Assembly (NCBI GenBank): GCA_026936335.1
Contig: JAPMXV010000060.1
Coordinates: 186,001 to 250,000, forward strand
DNA length: 64,000 bases
Direction of reading: 5' to 3'
DNA from: Mantamonas sphyraenae STR306
Lineage: Eukaryota; Protista; CRuMs
The notes beneath the pieces are model-generated. The model did no database searches and was not told where the DNA came from. It saw only the letters and a list, made by a program, of their open reading frames with translations. The stretch's first letter is position 1; every line of letters begins with the position of its first letter. Shown here in pieces: positions 50,615 to 55,478 of this stretch. Made by a program: the position numbers and the translations under genes.

Positions 50615-51901
50615 ATGCACCAACCCCTCCTCGACGACAAACACGTCACTTCCGGAGGCGGTGACAACGACAGTGACGACGACGACGACGGTGATTCTGA
50701 TCATTCGCAGCAGGCAACCGACCCTTTTCGCGAGGTGTCCATGAGGGATCACAGGTCGCGTGTGTCCCTCGAAAGCTCCCTCCACTCCTGGCACCAAAGG
50801 CTCAGTCTCCTCCCTCTTCGCTTTCTCATGGCATCCGTAGGTGCGTTTCCCTCCGTGGACATCACCCAGGAGCTTCTCAGTGTCGACTACGACCCAGACG
50901 TCCTCTTCAACCTCAACACTATCCGAGCAAGCCACCTCTTTCCAGCAAACACCTTTCAGTCAGACCCAAGCTGGCTTCCCTGGCTCAAGTTTTCCTGGAG
51001 CATCACCATCATCCTCCTCTACGCCTTCTCCATGACCATGTACATTCTCGAGGTGCCCTCATACGCCCTCCTCTTCACCGTCCTTGGCGAATTCCCAGCC
51101 ACTGCCATCTGTGTGTTTTCCATCCGCCTCCTGGCCTTCCGTACCATTGCCATCTTCCACTACTACCGCTGCACGCTCGATCCCGAGCGGTTCGAGCGCG
51201 CCATGTTCCGCAGCGGCGTGTGCAACTGGCTCGTGCTTCCCATCATCCTCGTCTCCACCACAACCAAGCTGGTCTTTGACAGCTACACGGGCGACGCCAA
51301 CGTTCCTGAGAGTATTCGACAAACCATCATCCTGGCCGCCGTTGCCGTTGCCTTTTGCTTGGTCGGCTTTGTCGGCTTGCTCACTCGCGCACACGCCCTC
51401 TCTGTCCTCCAGCACATCATCCATGGCCTTCCGGACCCCACACGCGTCCATTGGGAGTTTCGCAATGCCCTCGAGTGGATCAACGCCGCAGCACTCGTTC
51501 CCTTCCTCGGCATCACCCTCCTCATGGGCATCAACGCCCTCCTCTTTGCCATCATCGCCCTGGAACAACCAGAGGGCATCACTGCCTCCTCTATTCAAGG
51601 TGTAGTGGGCTTCATCATCCCCATCTTCATCCCAATCGTGCCCGCTGCCCTCGTCACCGCCATCTGCCAGCGCATCCAGGACGCTGCCAACAGCCAGCTC
51701 GCAAAGGTGCCTCCCGACCAGGATTGCACCCAACAGCTCAAACTTGTCCACCACATGACCCTCGCTCGCGACGTTGGCGGTCGCATTGGTGGAGTTTTGA
51801 TTACGCCGTCTCTGGCTGCAAATCTGTCTTACAGCGTTGTCCTTGCCATCGCTACGTCACTGCAGTACGGACGCCGAGGTGGATCCTTCACCTTTGGCTG
51901 A
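50615..51901 (+). CDS. Multi-pass (about 7TM) membrane protein, gustatory-receptor-like (GRL/DUF3537, 7TM ion channel superfamily)
   Basis: About 7 hydrophobic segments and no signal peptide. The C-terminal GGRIGGVLITPSLAANLSYSVVLAIATSLQY resembles the TM7a/b signature that ends TYhhhhhQF. Confidence 0.6.
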   Translation: MHQPLLDDKHVTSGGGDNDSDDDDDGDSDHSQQATDPFREVSMRDHRSRVSLESSLHSWHQRLSLLPLRFLMASVGAFPSVDITQELLSVDYDPDVLFNLNTIRASHLFPANTFQSDPSWLPWLKFSWSITIILLYAFSMTMYILEVPSYALLFTVLGEFPATAICVFSIRLLAFRTIAIFHYYRCTLDPERFERAMFRSGVCNWLVLPIILVSTTTKLVFDSYTGDANVPESIRQTIILAAVAVAFCLVGFVGLLTRAHALSVLQHIIHGLPDPTRVHWEFRNALEWINAAALVPFLGITLLMGINALLFAIIALEQPEGITASSIQGVVGFIIPIFIPIVPAALVTAICQRIQDAANSQLAKVPPDQDCTQQLKLVHHMTLARDVGGRIGGVLITPSLAANLSYSVVLAIATSLQYGRRGGSFTFG

Positions 51902-51962
51902 CGACTGTCAAAGTCGTCCACATGCGCACCGCTCCGCACGACTCAATCAAAATCCATCTTTC

Positions 51963-53671
51963 ATGCTCTCGAGGCGCGTTGTCCCCGCAATTGGGTTGCT
52001 TGCGGCTCTCCTGGTGTTCTGCACCCCCACTGTACATGCAGTTTGCTACGGCAATCTGTCCATGGTGATGGCCCTGGACGGTAGCGGCTCCATCAACGAC
52101 CAGGATTTTGCCCGCAGCATCTCCTTTGGCGAACAGCTCCTGGACGCCTTCCAGTCCCCGACAAAGAGTGTGGCCATGGGCATCATCCAATTCTCTGAAC
52201 AGCTGGGCTACCCCAACCTCAATGACGAAGCCCTGCTCTCCAACGACCTCAAGGCTCTCAAGGACAAACTCAAGACCGCCCGCCAGCTCAAACAGGCCAC
52301 AGACATTGCTAGGCCCCTTAAGGAGGCCATGCGCATGCTCCAAGCCGACAAGCGCACCGGCATCCCCGACGTCGTCTTTCTTGTTACAGACGGTGCCTCA
52401 AACCGCGGCGAAGGTAAGGAATGCCCGTCCCTTCCTTTCTTTCCTTGCCGCGTGCTCATTCCCGTGTCTGTCCCTCCACTCCCTTGCTCTTCCCTCCGCT
52501 CACAATTCCTCACCTGCGCCCCATCCTGCCCTCTGGCCCACAGATCCCGTTGCACAAGCACAGGTGCTCAAGAACGCGGGCATTCGCATTTTTGTCGTCG
52601 CCGTGGGCGACGCTGCCTCTGGCAGCGCACAGATCAATGCCATCGCGTCGCAGCCCACCGCCAGTAGGTTCCCCTCCCCCCACGTCTTGCTTGCACACAC
52701 GCCGTGTGTTCCCAATTCTCCACCAACGACCGTTGTTGTCATTTTTCGCGCGCCTGGTTCACTCGCCTCACACACCCTTGCAACGCACGCCATGTGTCGA
52801 ATCGCGACGTGCCACACACACACACACACACACAGAACACGTGTTCACCGTGCAAACTGCGGCGGAGCTGTCGCGCAACGTCAACGCGGTGCTGGAGCAA
52901 ATTTGCATCGCCGTCATTTCCATCAAACCCAACGAAGGCTGCCTGGAAGGCGGCACCGTGGTCAACATCACCGGCAGTGGATTGAACCAGGGCTTCGACA
53001 ACCAGACACGGTGCATGTTTGGCAACACCAGTGTGCCTGCACGTGCCATCAACGCCTCTTTTGCCCAGTGCACCGCCCCGAAAACAAACAAGACGGGCAA
53101 TGTCAGCCTCGAGGTGACCACTGACGGCGGCGTCTACTACACACAGAACCAGCGCCAGTTCAAGTATGTCTATTGCCCCGTCCTGTGGCCCCTGTGGCTC
53201 CTTCTGCTTCTCCCGCTGGGCGCTCTCGCCTTTTTCTACCGCAAGTACAAACGGGACATGGAAGAGGACGAAGCCTCGCTACTCGGCTCGCAGATGCCCG
53301 TTGTACCCGTGGCCCCGCACAAGGCACCACCCGCTGTACCCGCAGGCAAGAAATGGAAGGAAGTCGAGGCCGGCGGTTACCTGTGGGCCATGAGTGGTGG
53401 CGGTGCACGTCGCCTCTCTGTCCGTTGGGGTGACTTGGGAGGCACCGAAAGTGCTCCCACCGACTTTGCTCACAATGTGCGCGTGTACGAAAACACGGGC
53501 AACTGGCTCGTCGACACCGAAACTGGCCATGCCCTCCCGTTTCATCAGCAGATGCTCAACTGCGCCTGCTGCTGCAAACCCCCGCAAGAGGAGCGTGTCC
53601 AGCACCGCCATCCCCGCCAAGAGAGCGTCGAAGGTCACATGGAGCAGGTGTATTTGCCACCGAAAGTGTAG
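51963..53671 (+). CDS. Anthrax toxin receptor (ANTXR/TEM8/CMG2)-like type I membrane protein: SP-vWA-Ig/IPT-TM-tail, 3 exons
   Basis: Introns 52414-52543 and 52664-52835. CYGNLSMVMALDGSGS (MIDAS), LVTDG, HVFTV..ICIAVISIKPNEGC..ITGSGL, a TM helix, then KKWKEVEAGGY..GGGARRLSVRWGDLGGTE. Confidence 0.8.
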
Positions 53672-53689: not shown

Positions 53690-55384
53690 TCAAACCACCA
53701 CCACCACTCCAACTCCAGCCCCTCCTCCCTGCAACCCTTGATCCTTCCTCGTAAGCTCTTGTGCATGCAGACGCCTCTCCTCACGTCGTGCACCCAACCA
53801 TGCAATCTGCTGTCGGTCGCCCGCTACTTTCCGGTTGATCTCAGTCACCACCGTAGCCAACAGTAGCATGCCCGCCACAAAGGCCACAAGAGCGGTGTAA
53901 TAAAACACGAGCAGCAGCACAATGGGCCCATCGCCCGAATTGGCCGCCACAACATCAGCCCAGTTTGCTGCTCCCGGGGCGCCAAACATCAAGCCAAACA
54001 ACACCAGCATCACTGCAGGGGCGACCAGGTTGGTGGCATACAGCCAGGTGAGAACACACAGCACGCTCCAGTGGCGTAAATGGCGCCCCCGGGTGAACGG
54101 GAGAAACCTGTACCGCGGCAATCCCGTTCGCTTTTCACCCGTCAACCCATCTGGGAAACACATCACACGCTGGTTGACTTCGAGACGCTTCATCATCATG
54201 GCACGGCGCAAGTTGACACAGTCCAGGCCCAGATGACGCGGTGCTTCGCGCATCGATCGCTTCGACAGCACCTCGACCAGGATGCTTGAATCCGAAGAAC
54301 GGTGGGCATCATCCATCCAGTAGAGTCGCACCAGCACAAACAGACACGTCAGTGGGAATGCAGTGATGAAAAACCCCGTCATCAAGCCCGTAATCACAGC
54401 CACCACGCGTGTCGTCGCCACCTCCCATCGTGAGTAGCTGTAGTCGATGCCTTCTTCCAGCTCAGTGACATTGTACACGACCATGAAAAAACCCGTGAGC
54501 AGCCGTGGGGCACTGATGTTCCACAGCAGCATGGCAGCCTCCGGCGAGTAGCTCTGCGCAAACGACAGCAGCATGAGCATGAGGATGTCGGTAGCCATGA
54601 AGCACATGGGAATGTACACCTTCCTCGGCACGGATGCATCCAGACCCAAAGTGTAGGTTTTGCTGAAGATCTGCAGGAGGGAGATGCAAATCGACACCAC
54701 TGCCACCGAATCCACCTCTCTCGTTTCAAGCTGCACATAGAACTGCAACACAGACAAGGGGATGGCCTCCACCACGGTCTCCACAAAAAGTCCTGCTTCA
54801 CGCAACGCACGTCGCAGCATCTGTTCGTGGAACATTTCGCTCTTGATCTCCACGTCGTCCTTCAGCTGCGACGCACTCGCAATAAAGGCTTCGGCCACCT
54901 CATCCGTGTACTTGGACGCACTGCCGCCGCTGTACATCAGCCAGTTGTCCAGTTCGAGGTAGTTAACAACCCACATGTACAGCGGAAGCACGGGGAAGGT
55001 CAACCCACATACCCACATGCTCCACTTGGACACCAAGTCGCCCTTGCTGTTTTGATAAAGATGCCGCTTGTTTGCTTTGATGCCCTCGGCGATGTTCATG
55101 ATCACGACAAAGAGGGACACGGCCGGAGCAATCGACCAGAAAACCATGCCAATCTGAAAATAGCTGTCCAGACCACGTGCGTGGTAGCCCAGCAGCACAA
55201 TGATGTCTGTGATGACGTCCAAAAGGTAGAGTAGGGGCACGGCGAGATCGTAGAGCATCGACAAGCTCGTGCGCAAACACTGCCCTCCTGCACTCTGCTG
55301 CCTGTGTCGCTCCTGCGCCTCATGGGTCATCTGGCTCAACGTTTTACGTCGCACAGTATTGCCCGAACTGCCAAACCCCTCCAT
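53690..55384 (-). CDS. XK-related-like polytopic membrane protein
   Basis: LYLLDVITDIIVLLGY, FVETVVEAIPLSVLQFY and SICISLLQI match the XK-family pattern. About 10 TM segments. Confidence 0.6.
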   Translation of the reverse strand: MEGFGSSGNTVRRKTLSQMTHEAQERHRQQSAGGQCLRTSLSMLYDLAVPLLYLLDVITDIIVLLGYHARGLDSYFQIGMVFWSIAPAVSLFVVIMNIAEGIKANKRHLYQNSKGDLVSKWSMWVCGLTFPVLPLYMWVVNYLELDNWLMYSGGSASKYTDEVAEAFIASASQLKDDVEIKSEMFHEQMLRRALREAGLFVETVVEAIPLSVLQFYVQLETREVDSVAVVSICISLLQIFSKTYTLGLDASVPRKVYIPMCFMATDILMLMLLSFAQSYSPEAAMLLWNISAPRLLTGFFMVVYNVTELEEGIDYSYSRWEVATTRVVAVITGLMTGFFITAFPLTCLFVLVRLYWMDDAHRSSDSSILVEVLSKRSMREAPRHLGLDCVNLRRAMMMKRLEVNQRVMCFPDGLTGEKRTGLPRYRFLPFTRGRHLRHWSVLCVLTWLYATNLVAPAVMLVLFGLMFGAPGAANWADVVAANSGDGPIVLLLVFYYTALVAFVAGMLLLATVVTEINRKVAGDRQQIAWLGARREERRLHAQELTRKDQGLQGGGAGVGVVVVV

Positions 55385-55478
55385 TGAGCTGTGTATTCCT
55401 CGGGAAACGCCTGCGCCTGAATCTGAATTCCTTGCCCCGACACACGCACCCACGCACAACTCCCCTCCCCCGACTTCC

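Follow-up and report, generated by a model that had tools for sequence, protein, structure and literature searches.

A single-copy gene of the gliding marine protist Mantamonas sphyraenae, lying on the forward strand of the 64,000-nucleotide stretch of DNA analysed here (the window), codes in three exons for a type I membrane protein, in which a MIDAS VWA head is followed by an IPT/TIG domain, a single membrane helix and a cytosolic tail. This is the order of parts (signal peptide, MIDAS VWA, Ig-like domain of IPT fold, membrane helix, tail) found in ANTXR1/TEM8 and ANTXR2/CMG2, known from work on animals as receptors that bind extracellular matrix and anthrax toxin. On balance, we think it reasonably probable that the gene product is a metal-dependent adhesion receptor coupled to actin and a distant ANTXR-like relative without Ant_C, and common ancestry with ANTXR seems likely. 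That the DNA comes from a non-animal genome, as supposed in a previous sequence-only reading of the window, is borne out by its source: Mantamonas belongs to CRuMs and is placed at the base of Amorphea, and the 25,061,354 bases in 78 contigs of the assembly agree with the FALCON assembly published for M. sphyraenae (25.06 Mb, 78 contigs, GC 59.19%; PMC10492846).

The features of the gene are collected in Table 1. Its extracellular part opens with a predicted signal peptide, in which the 19-residue hydrophobicity of exon 1 peaks (residues 6-24, Kyte-Doolittle mean 2.22) and for which the -3/-1 rule predicts the cleavage site. All five MIDAS residues are present in the VWA domain that follows, a feature not specific to ANTXR, with HMMER alignment to integrin alpha-1 putting the MIDAS Thr two residues off T113. 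The protein has seven N-x-S/T sequons, every one of them on the side predicted to face outwards, and R-K-Y-K-R follows the membrane helix. A single-sequence AlphaFold model of exon 3, unusable as a whole (overall pLDDT 43), shows a helix at 116-149 with pLDDT about 90.

Table 1. Features of the Mantamonas gene, in coordinates of the window
Feature	Position	Strand	Detail and basis
Exon 1: start codon, signal peptide, first two thirds of VWA	51963..52413	+	Pfam VWA E 1.5e-14, profile positions 2-117
Predicted signal peptide, 26 residues, ends V-H-A	51963..52040	+	basic start, then hydrophobic 19-mer
MIDAS D-x-S-x-S (D39, S41, S43)	52077..52091	+	sequence read
MIDAS T113	52299-52301	+	usual VWA T-x-hydrophobic-x-x-x-hydrophobic pattern
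MIDAS D143	52389-52391	+	sequence read
Exon 1 donor, G/GTAAGG	junction 52413/52414	+	sequence read
Intron 1	52414..52543	+	130 nt, GTAAGG..CCACAG, phase 1; split codon across junction GAT
Exon 2: VWA profile positions 122-155	52544..52663	+	Pfam VWA E 0.006 over 39 residues
Intron 2	52664..52835	+	172 nt, GTAGGT..(CA)n CAG, phase 1; split codon across junction AAA
Exon 3	52836..53671	+	opens with last strand and helix of VWA
Start of exon 3: last VWA strand and helix, up to closing C23	52836..52906	+	AlphaFold helix 8-22
IPT/TIG (Ig-like) domain, exon 3 residues 24-113	52907..53176	+	Pfam TIG 3.6e-11; Cys 35, 59, 78, 113; six N-x-S/T sequons
Single transmembrane helix, exon 3 residues 115-134	53180..53239	+	19-mer hydrophobicity peak of exon 3, at residue 115 (Kyte-Doolittle 2.22)
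Cytosolic tail, 143 residues: acidic patch, Pro-rich linker, conserved segment, distal Cys cluster	53240..53668	+	
Segment resembling TEM8/CMG2 actin-binding stretch	53348..53449	+	hand comparison with PMC2832758
Tail core GGxxRxxVRWG[DE]xGxTE	53399-53449	+	exon 3 residues 188-204
Distal Cys cluster C-A-C-C-C	53561..53575	+	sequence read

Besides the order of its parts, the ectodomain shares with ANTXR2 a six-Cys scaffold of almost equal spacings. The mature ectodomain holds exactly six Cys residues, namely C28 of exon 1, which lies 11 residues ahead of the MIDAS Asp, and C23, C35, C59, C78 and C113 of exon 3. ANTXR2 has disulfides C39-C218 in its VWA domain and C230-C315 and C255-C279 in its Ig-like domain (residues 219-318), so that the spacings counted from the VWA-closing Cys are 12/25/24/36 in ANTXR2 versus 12/24/19/35 in Mantamonas (PMC4479931). 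C23 is followed by the next Cys after 12 residues, like C218 by C230 in ANTXR2, and the last ectodomain Cys stands just ahead of the membrane helix in both proteins; this mapping of Cys residues is by spacing and by the ends of a structural alignment (see below), not by residue-level alignment. The scaffold agrees with the claim of the sequence-only reading that the VWA-closing Cys pair is kept, and judging from the pattern, three disulfides may form as in ANTXR, with C28 of exon 1 and C23 of exon 3 closing the VWA domain and with C35-C113 as the outer and C59-C78 as the inner bond of the Ig-like domain. How telling the two IPT pairs are can be gauged from 1843 TIG repeats taken from the best 150 database matches and aligned to the domain of our gene. 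The inner pair is generic, with Cys in 1685/1842 (91%) and 1747/1832 (95%) of the repeats; the outer pair is rare, with Cys in 6/1801 and 12/517 and at both positions in 0/502. As for the VWA closure, an N-to-C-terminal Cys pair also closes other VWA domains, for example vWF A1 and A3.

On the cytosolic side, ANTXR1/2 carry an acidic patch past the membrane helix, and so does the Mantamonas tail; the ANTXR1/2 tail is longer, with a proline-rich end that the Mantamonas tail lacks. A KKW block upstream of the tail core presumably resembles the human ANTXR tail as well. The core itself can be compared with residues 379-411 of TEM8-1, printed as the actin-interacting stretch that was narrowed down by Garlick et al. 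and identical in CMG2 but for one residue (PMC2832758). The human tail stretch quoted in the sequence-only reading agrees with these residues as printed. Aligned by hand and without gaps, exon 3 residues 188-204 and TEM8 389-405 share 10 of their 17 residues (in order G, G, R, V, R, W, G, G, T, E), with conservative replacements at three more. After a one-residue indel, residues 177-181 share two of five positions with TEM8 379-383, and the hand count over the whole match, which is glycine-rich and spans about 27 residues, comes to 12/27 with one indel. Core and TEM8 stretch lie at similar distances past the membrane helix. The BLOSUM62 sum of the core is about 60 or, by hand estimate, roughly 30 bits, which would be significant for a comparison of this tail with this stretch and not database-wide. 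Written as a DNA pattern, the core has a single match in the window, a single one in the whole 25 Mb genome and none in metagenome and prokaryote genome collections. No second copy of the tail turns up elsewhere in the genome, and it matches no Pfam family at E<=10 and no PDB sequence in a meaningful way. Differing from ANTXR1/2, it has no juxtamembrane Cys and instead carries the distal C-A-C-C-C cluster, which could be palmitoylated.

The likeness just described has to be weighed against an explanation in which VWA, IPT/TIG and membrane helix, drawn from domains abundant in the genome, were assembled independently into an adhesin that is no ANTXR relative and whose tail came to look like that of TEM8 either accidentally or through convergence towards a shared partner. 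Several of our findings fit such a scenario. The best PDB sequence matches of exon 1 are collagen VI alpha-3 (E 4e-6) and integrin alpha-1 (E about 1e-5), with integrin alpha X/M and vWF A domains matching too and no ANTXR chain reported, even at E<=10. Judged by sequence, the VWA domain is nearer to integrin I-domains and collagen VI than to ANTXR, and ANTXR resembles it no more than other VWA domains do. For exon 3, MET and plexin IPT domains come first among PDB sequences, with ANTXR2 only at E 0.08, and the VWA/IPT junction alone has its best match in MET, not ANTXR. Moreover, TIG repeats abound in the genome, where exon 3 has matches at 27 further places within open frames as long as about 10,900 residues, and the best database relatives of the domain found by HMMER with exon 3 are proteins of 5,000-8,000 residues with 30-48 TIG repeats.

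Profile searches point in the same direction. Pfam defines the ANTXR family by VWA, Anth_Ig and Ant_C together, and the Ig-like domain of the Mantamonas protein scores as a generic TIG domain (PF01833, 43.3 bits versus a cut-off of 20.9) rather than as Anth_Ig (PF05587), which at 18.9 bits stays under its gathering cut-off of 26.9. Even this score looks like cross-talk between the related TIG and Anth_Ig models, as a genome-wide Anth_Ig scan gives 21.4 bits for the domain of our gene and 24.2 bits for a TIG repeat within an open frame of 6639 residues. Ant_C (PF05586) has no match at E<=10 on the tail alone; the whole genome yields none at E<=1 and control genomes are silent too, so the tail-alone test carries the weight. 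With two of three domains failing, full membership of the Pfam-defined family can be rejected. The "complete ANTXR architecture" that had been claimed from the letters is therefore an overstatement: the order of parts, the MIDAS VWA and an Ig-like domain stand, whereas Anth_Ig falls below its cut-off and Ant_C is absent.

The structural evidence cuts both ways. An AlphaFold model of the IPT domain, built with 19 TIG repeats of the same genome, reached pLDDT 79, and Foldseek with this model places ANTXR2 (NetF complex) at rank 2 with the longest alignment (111 columns) and E 4.5e-6. In structural alignments, the EBF3 IPT (Z 15.0, rmsd 1.8 over 92 residues) and the CAMTA1 TIG domain (Z 14.5) score above the Ig-like domain of ANTXR2, which reaches Z 11.2 at an rmsd of 2.4 over 90 residues; its alignment covers model residues 24-114, beginning right behind the Cys that closes the VWA and extending to where the model ends. 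By this model, the ANTXR Ig-like domain and the Mantamonas IPT domain share one fold, the E-set fold of IPT/TIG domains, which does not single out ANTXR. The IPT/TIG domains of MET, plexin, EBF and CAMTA, which are the best matches by sequence or structure, have the inner disulfide in common with the Mantamonas domain; unlike it, they are without the outer Cys pair and have no VWA domain in front.

None of the search tools used returned a significant ANTXR match. Searches were run per exon (51963-52412, 52546-52662, 52838-53668), and among the best 150 matches listed by HMMER for exon 3 there were only giant multi-TIG proteins. A word-indexed protein search was blank for exon 3, for the tail region and for the VWA region, the last two having been searched with open frames 52421-53668 and 51837-52664, respectively, with full-length proteins of ANTXR size eligible; for the tail, such a search lists a match of about 30 bits only if several exact five-residue words are shared with ANTXR. 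No usable match for the tail or for exon 3 (TIG excluded) came from a protein atlas, and a protein-guided scan of metagenome contigs gave no relative. These blanks reflect limited reach, not absence. The tail core does resemble the published actin-binding stretch of TEM8, while a statistically significant link to ANTXR did not emerge from the searches.

The sequence-only reading took in very many proteins, among which one short match, put by hand at about 30 bits, could turn up by chance. Against independent assembly, however, the only family of animals that shows this domain order is also the one hit by the tail match, which moreover lies on the corresponding side of the membrane and about as far from it, and the rare outer IPT Cys pair (0/502) together with near-identical Cys spacings would have to be a second, independent coincidence. 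We regard independent assembly as less likely, albeit as the main rival, and favour a distant ANTXR-like relative. Even so, with no significant ANTXR link, with Anth_Ig and Ant_C failing and with a VWA domain of integrin-like sequence, ANTXR homology and the idea that the receptor type is older than animals are plausible but unproven.

Integrin alpha I-domains and the A domains of collagen VI and vWF, the best exon 1 matches, have the MIDAS metal site in common with the Mantamonas protein. Unlike its VWA domain, integrin I-domains are inserted in a beta-propeller and act as heterodimers, and unlike a receptor, collagen VI and vWF are secreted; none of the three has the VWA-IPT-membrane helix layout or a tail of the Mantamonas type. 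An integrin subunit was considered as an identity for the gene product and rejected: such subunits have either a beta-propeller with FG-GAP repeats or a beta-I domain with an NPxY tail, whereas here only VWA and TIG were found, the tail is without NPxY and the Integrin_beta domain of the genome is on another contig (see below).

Could the architecture be an artefact of joining open frames, the gene model being wrong or the gene unexpressed? Both introns can be read in frame without a stop for some distance, which would allow for such an error. Yet the VWA profile is completed in order by the spliced model alone: exon 2 picks up the Pfam profile exactly where exon 1 leaves off, and exon 3 then brings a helix that ends at the closing Cys, which supports the splicing. 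Three reading frames are joined by two introns, both with GT..AG ends, into a coding sequence of 1407 nt (468 codons and TAG) that is divisible by three and runs from the first ATG of its frame at 51963 to a stop at 53669-53671. Signal peptide, membrane helix and glycosylation sequons all fall on the expected sides of the membrane. A faulty or silent model is accordingly very improbable; the gene is real and well formed, and it is single copy, the rest of the genome matching only the TIG part of exon 3 in a genome search. The four strings quoted from the Mantamonas protein in the sequence-only reading are likewise all found in their frames on the forward strand of 51963-53671, VCYGN..DGSGS at 52041-52091, HVFTV..NEGC at 52838-52942, KKWKEV..GGTE at 53348-53449 and CACCC at 53561-53575.

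The surroundings of the gene are compact. An open frame of 428 residues on the same strand (50615-51901, +) stops 61 nt upstream of the start codon, and a convergent one of 589 residues (53690-55459, -) ends 18 nt past the stop of the gene. With so little room between the gene and the convergent frame, their transcripts probably overlap at the 3' ends. A (CA)n microsatellite at 52815-52835 abuts the acceptor AG of intron 2, and changes in its length could affect splicing of the last exon.

ANTXR is known from animals, and a literature search found no paper that discusses it in, or links it with, unicellular eukaryotes, both of which might favour a gene acquired from an animal or a contig of animal contamination. 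Such an origin is scarcely credible, since the window matches the assembly in GC content (about 59%), contig count and total size fit a published assembly that had been decontaminated and whose contigs mostly have telomere repeats at their ends (PMC10492846), the introns are short and a recent transfer would have left a far closer likeness to animal ANTXR than is seen; contamination in particular can be rejected on the GC match and the decontaminated, telomere-ended assembly. ANTXR1/2 and the Mantamonas protein differ in their hosts, which are animals for the former and a CRuMs protist for the latter.

How might a distant ANTXR-like receptor work in such a cell? Ligand binding through a metal-coordinated acidic residue is established for VWA domains of integrin I-domain type and for ANTXR, and the MIDAS VWA head of the Mantamonas protein would bind an extracellular ligand in the same way. 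A glycosylated IPT domain, doubly stapled by disulfides, would serve as a spacer between head and membrane. On the cytosolic side, the conserved tail core may couple the receptor to cortical actin, either directly, as reported for TEM8, or via an adaptor, and acylation of the distal Cys cluster may anchor the tail at the membrane. For a gliding, bacteria-eating cell, such a receptor would serve traction or capture, and a role in attachment to substrate or prey during gliding or feeding may be envisaged. What the analysis itself establishes is how the gene is built and that it is single copy, which domains and MIDAS residues its product has, the topology and Cys pattern of that product and the organism it comes from; ANTXR homology, coupling to actin and the adhesion role are what we infer from these features.

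A comparable mode of working is seen in apicomplexan TRAP/MIC2 and in Dictyostelium Sib, where a MIDAS VWA head, one membrane helix and a short actin-linking tail operate in gliding or crawling cells. The likeness is one of working mode only: the stalks of these proteins consist of TSR or bacterial-like repeats, and their tails end in a terminal acidic/Trp motif or carry NPxY, a motif that the Mantamonas tail does not show when read in sequence.

As to the genomic setting, a full Integrin_beta head domain (PF00362; 117 bits, E 1.2e-32) is encoded outside the window, in a 1966-residue open frame on contig C56 (80264-80923, -), which indicates that an adhesion toolkit is present. A literature search for integrin together with Mantamonas found nothing. 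A 316-residue open frame on contig C38 (168950-169315, +) weakly matches the N-terminal part of Vinculin (30.5 bits, below the cut-off of 38.1), and Talin_middle has no match in the genome, control genomes being silent likewise. Open frames with TIG repeats, from 1,500 to about 10,900 residues long, occur on contigs C11, C25, C26, C31, C42, C44, C63, C70 and others, with C44 carrying near-identical TIG repeats in tandem at a period of about 381 nt.

If the favoured reading of a distant ANTXR-like relative is right, its presence in Mantamonas, outside animals, fungi and amoebae, would push the origin of this receptor type back very far. We see the chances as evenly poised that ANTXR-type receptors, defined by a MIDAS VWA, an IPT domain with two disulfide staples, a single membrane helix and an actin-coupling segment of GGxxRxxVRWG type, predate the split between CRuMs and Amorphea, that the collagen and anthrax toxin receptors of animals descend from an ancient protist adhesion receptor, and that the tail segment is among the oldest receptor-actin links known. 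Mantamonas would then have a second adhesion system next to the integrin-like one in the same genome. For the family, some 17 residues of the tail would be singled out as its conserved functional core, and the way in which ANTXR tails engage actin would become testable in a simple comparison.
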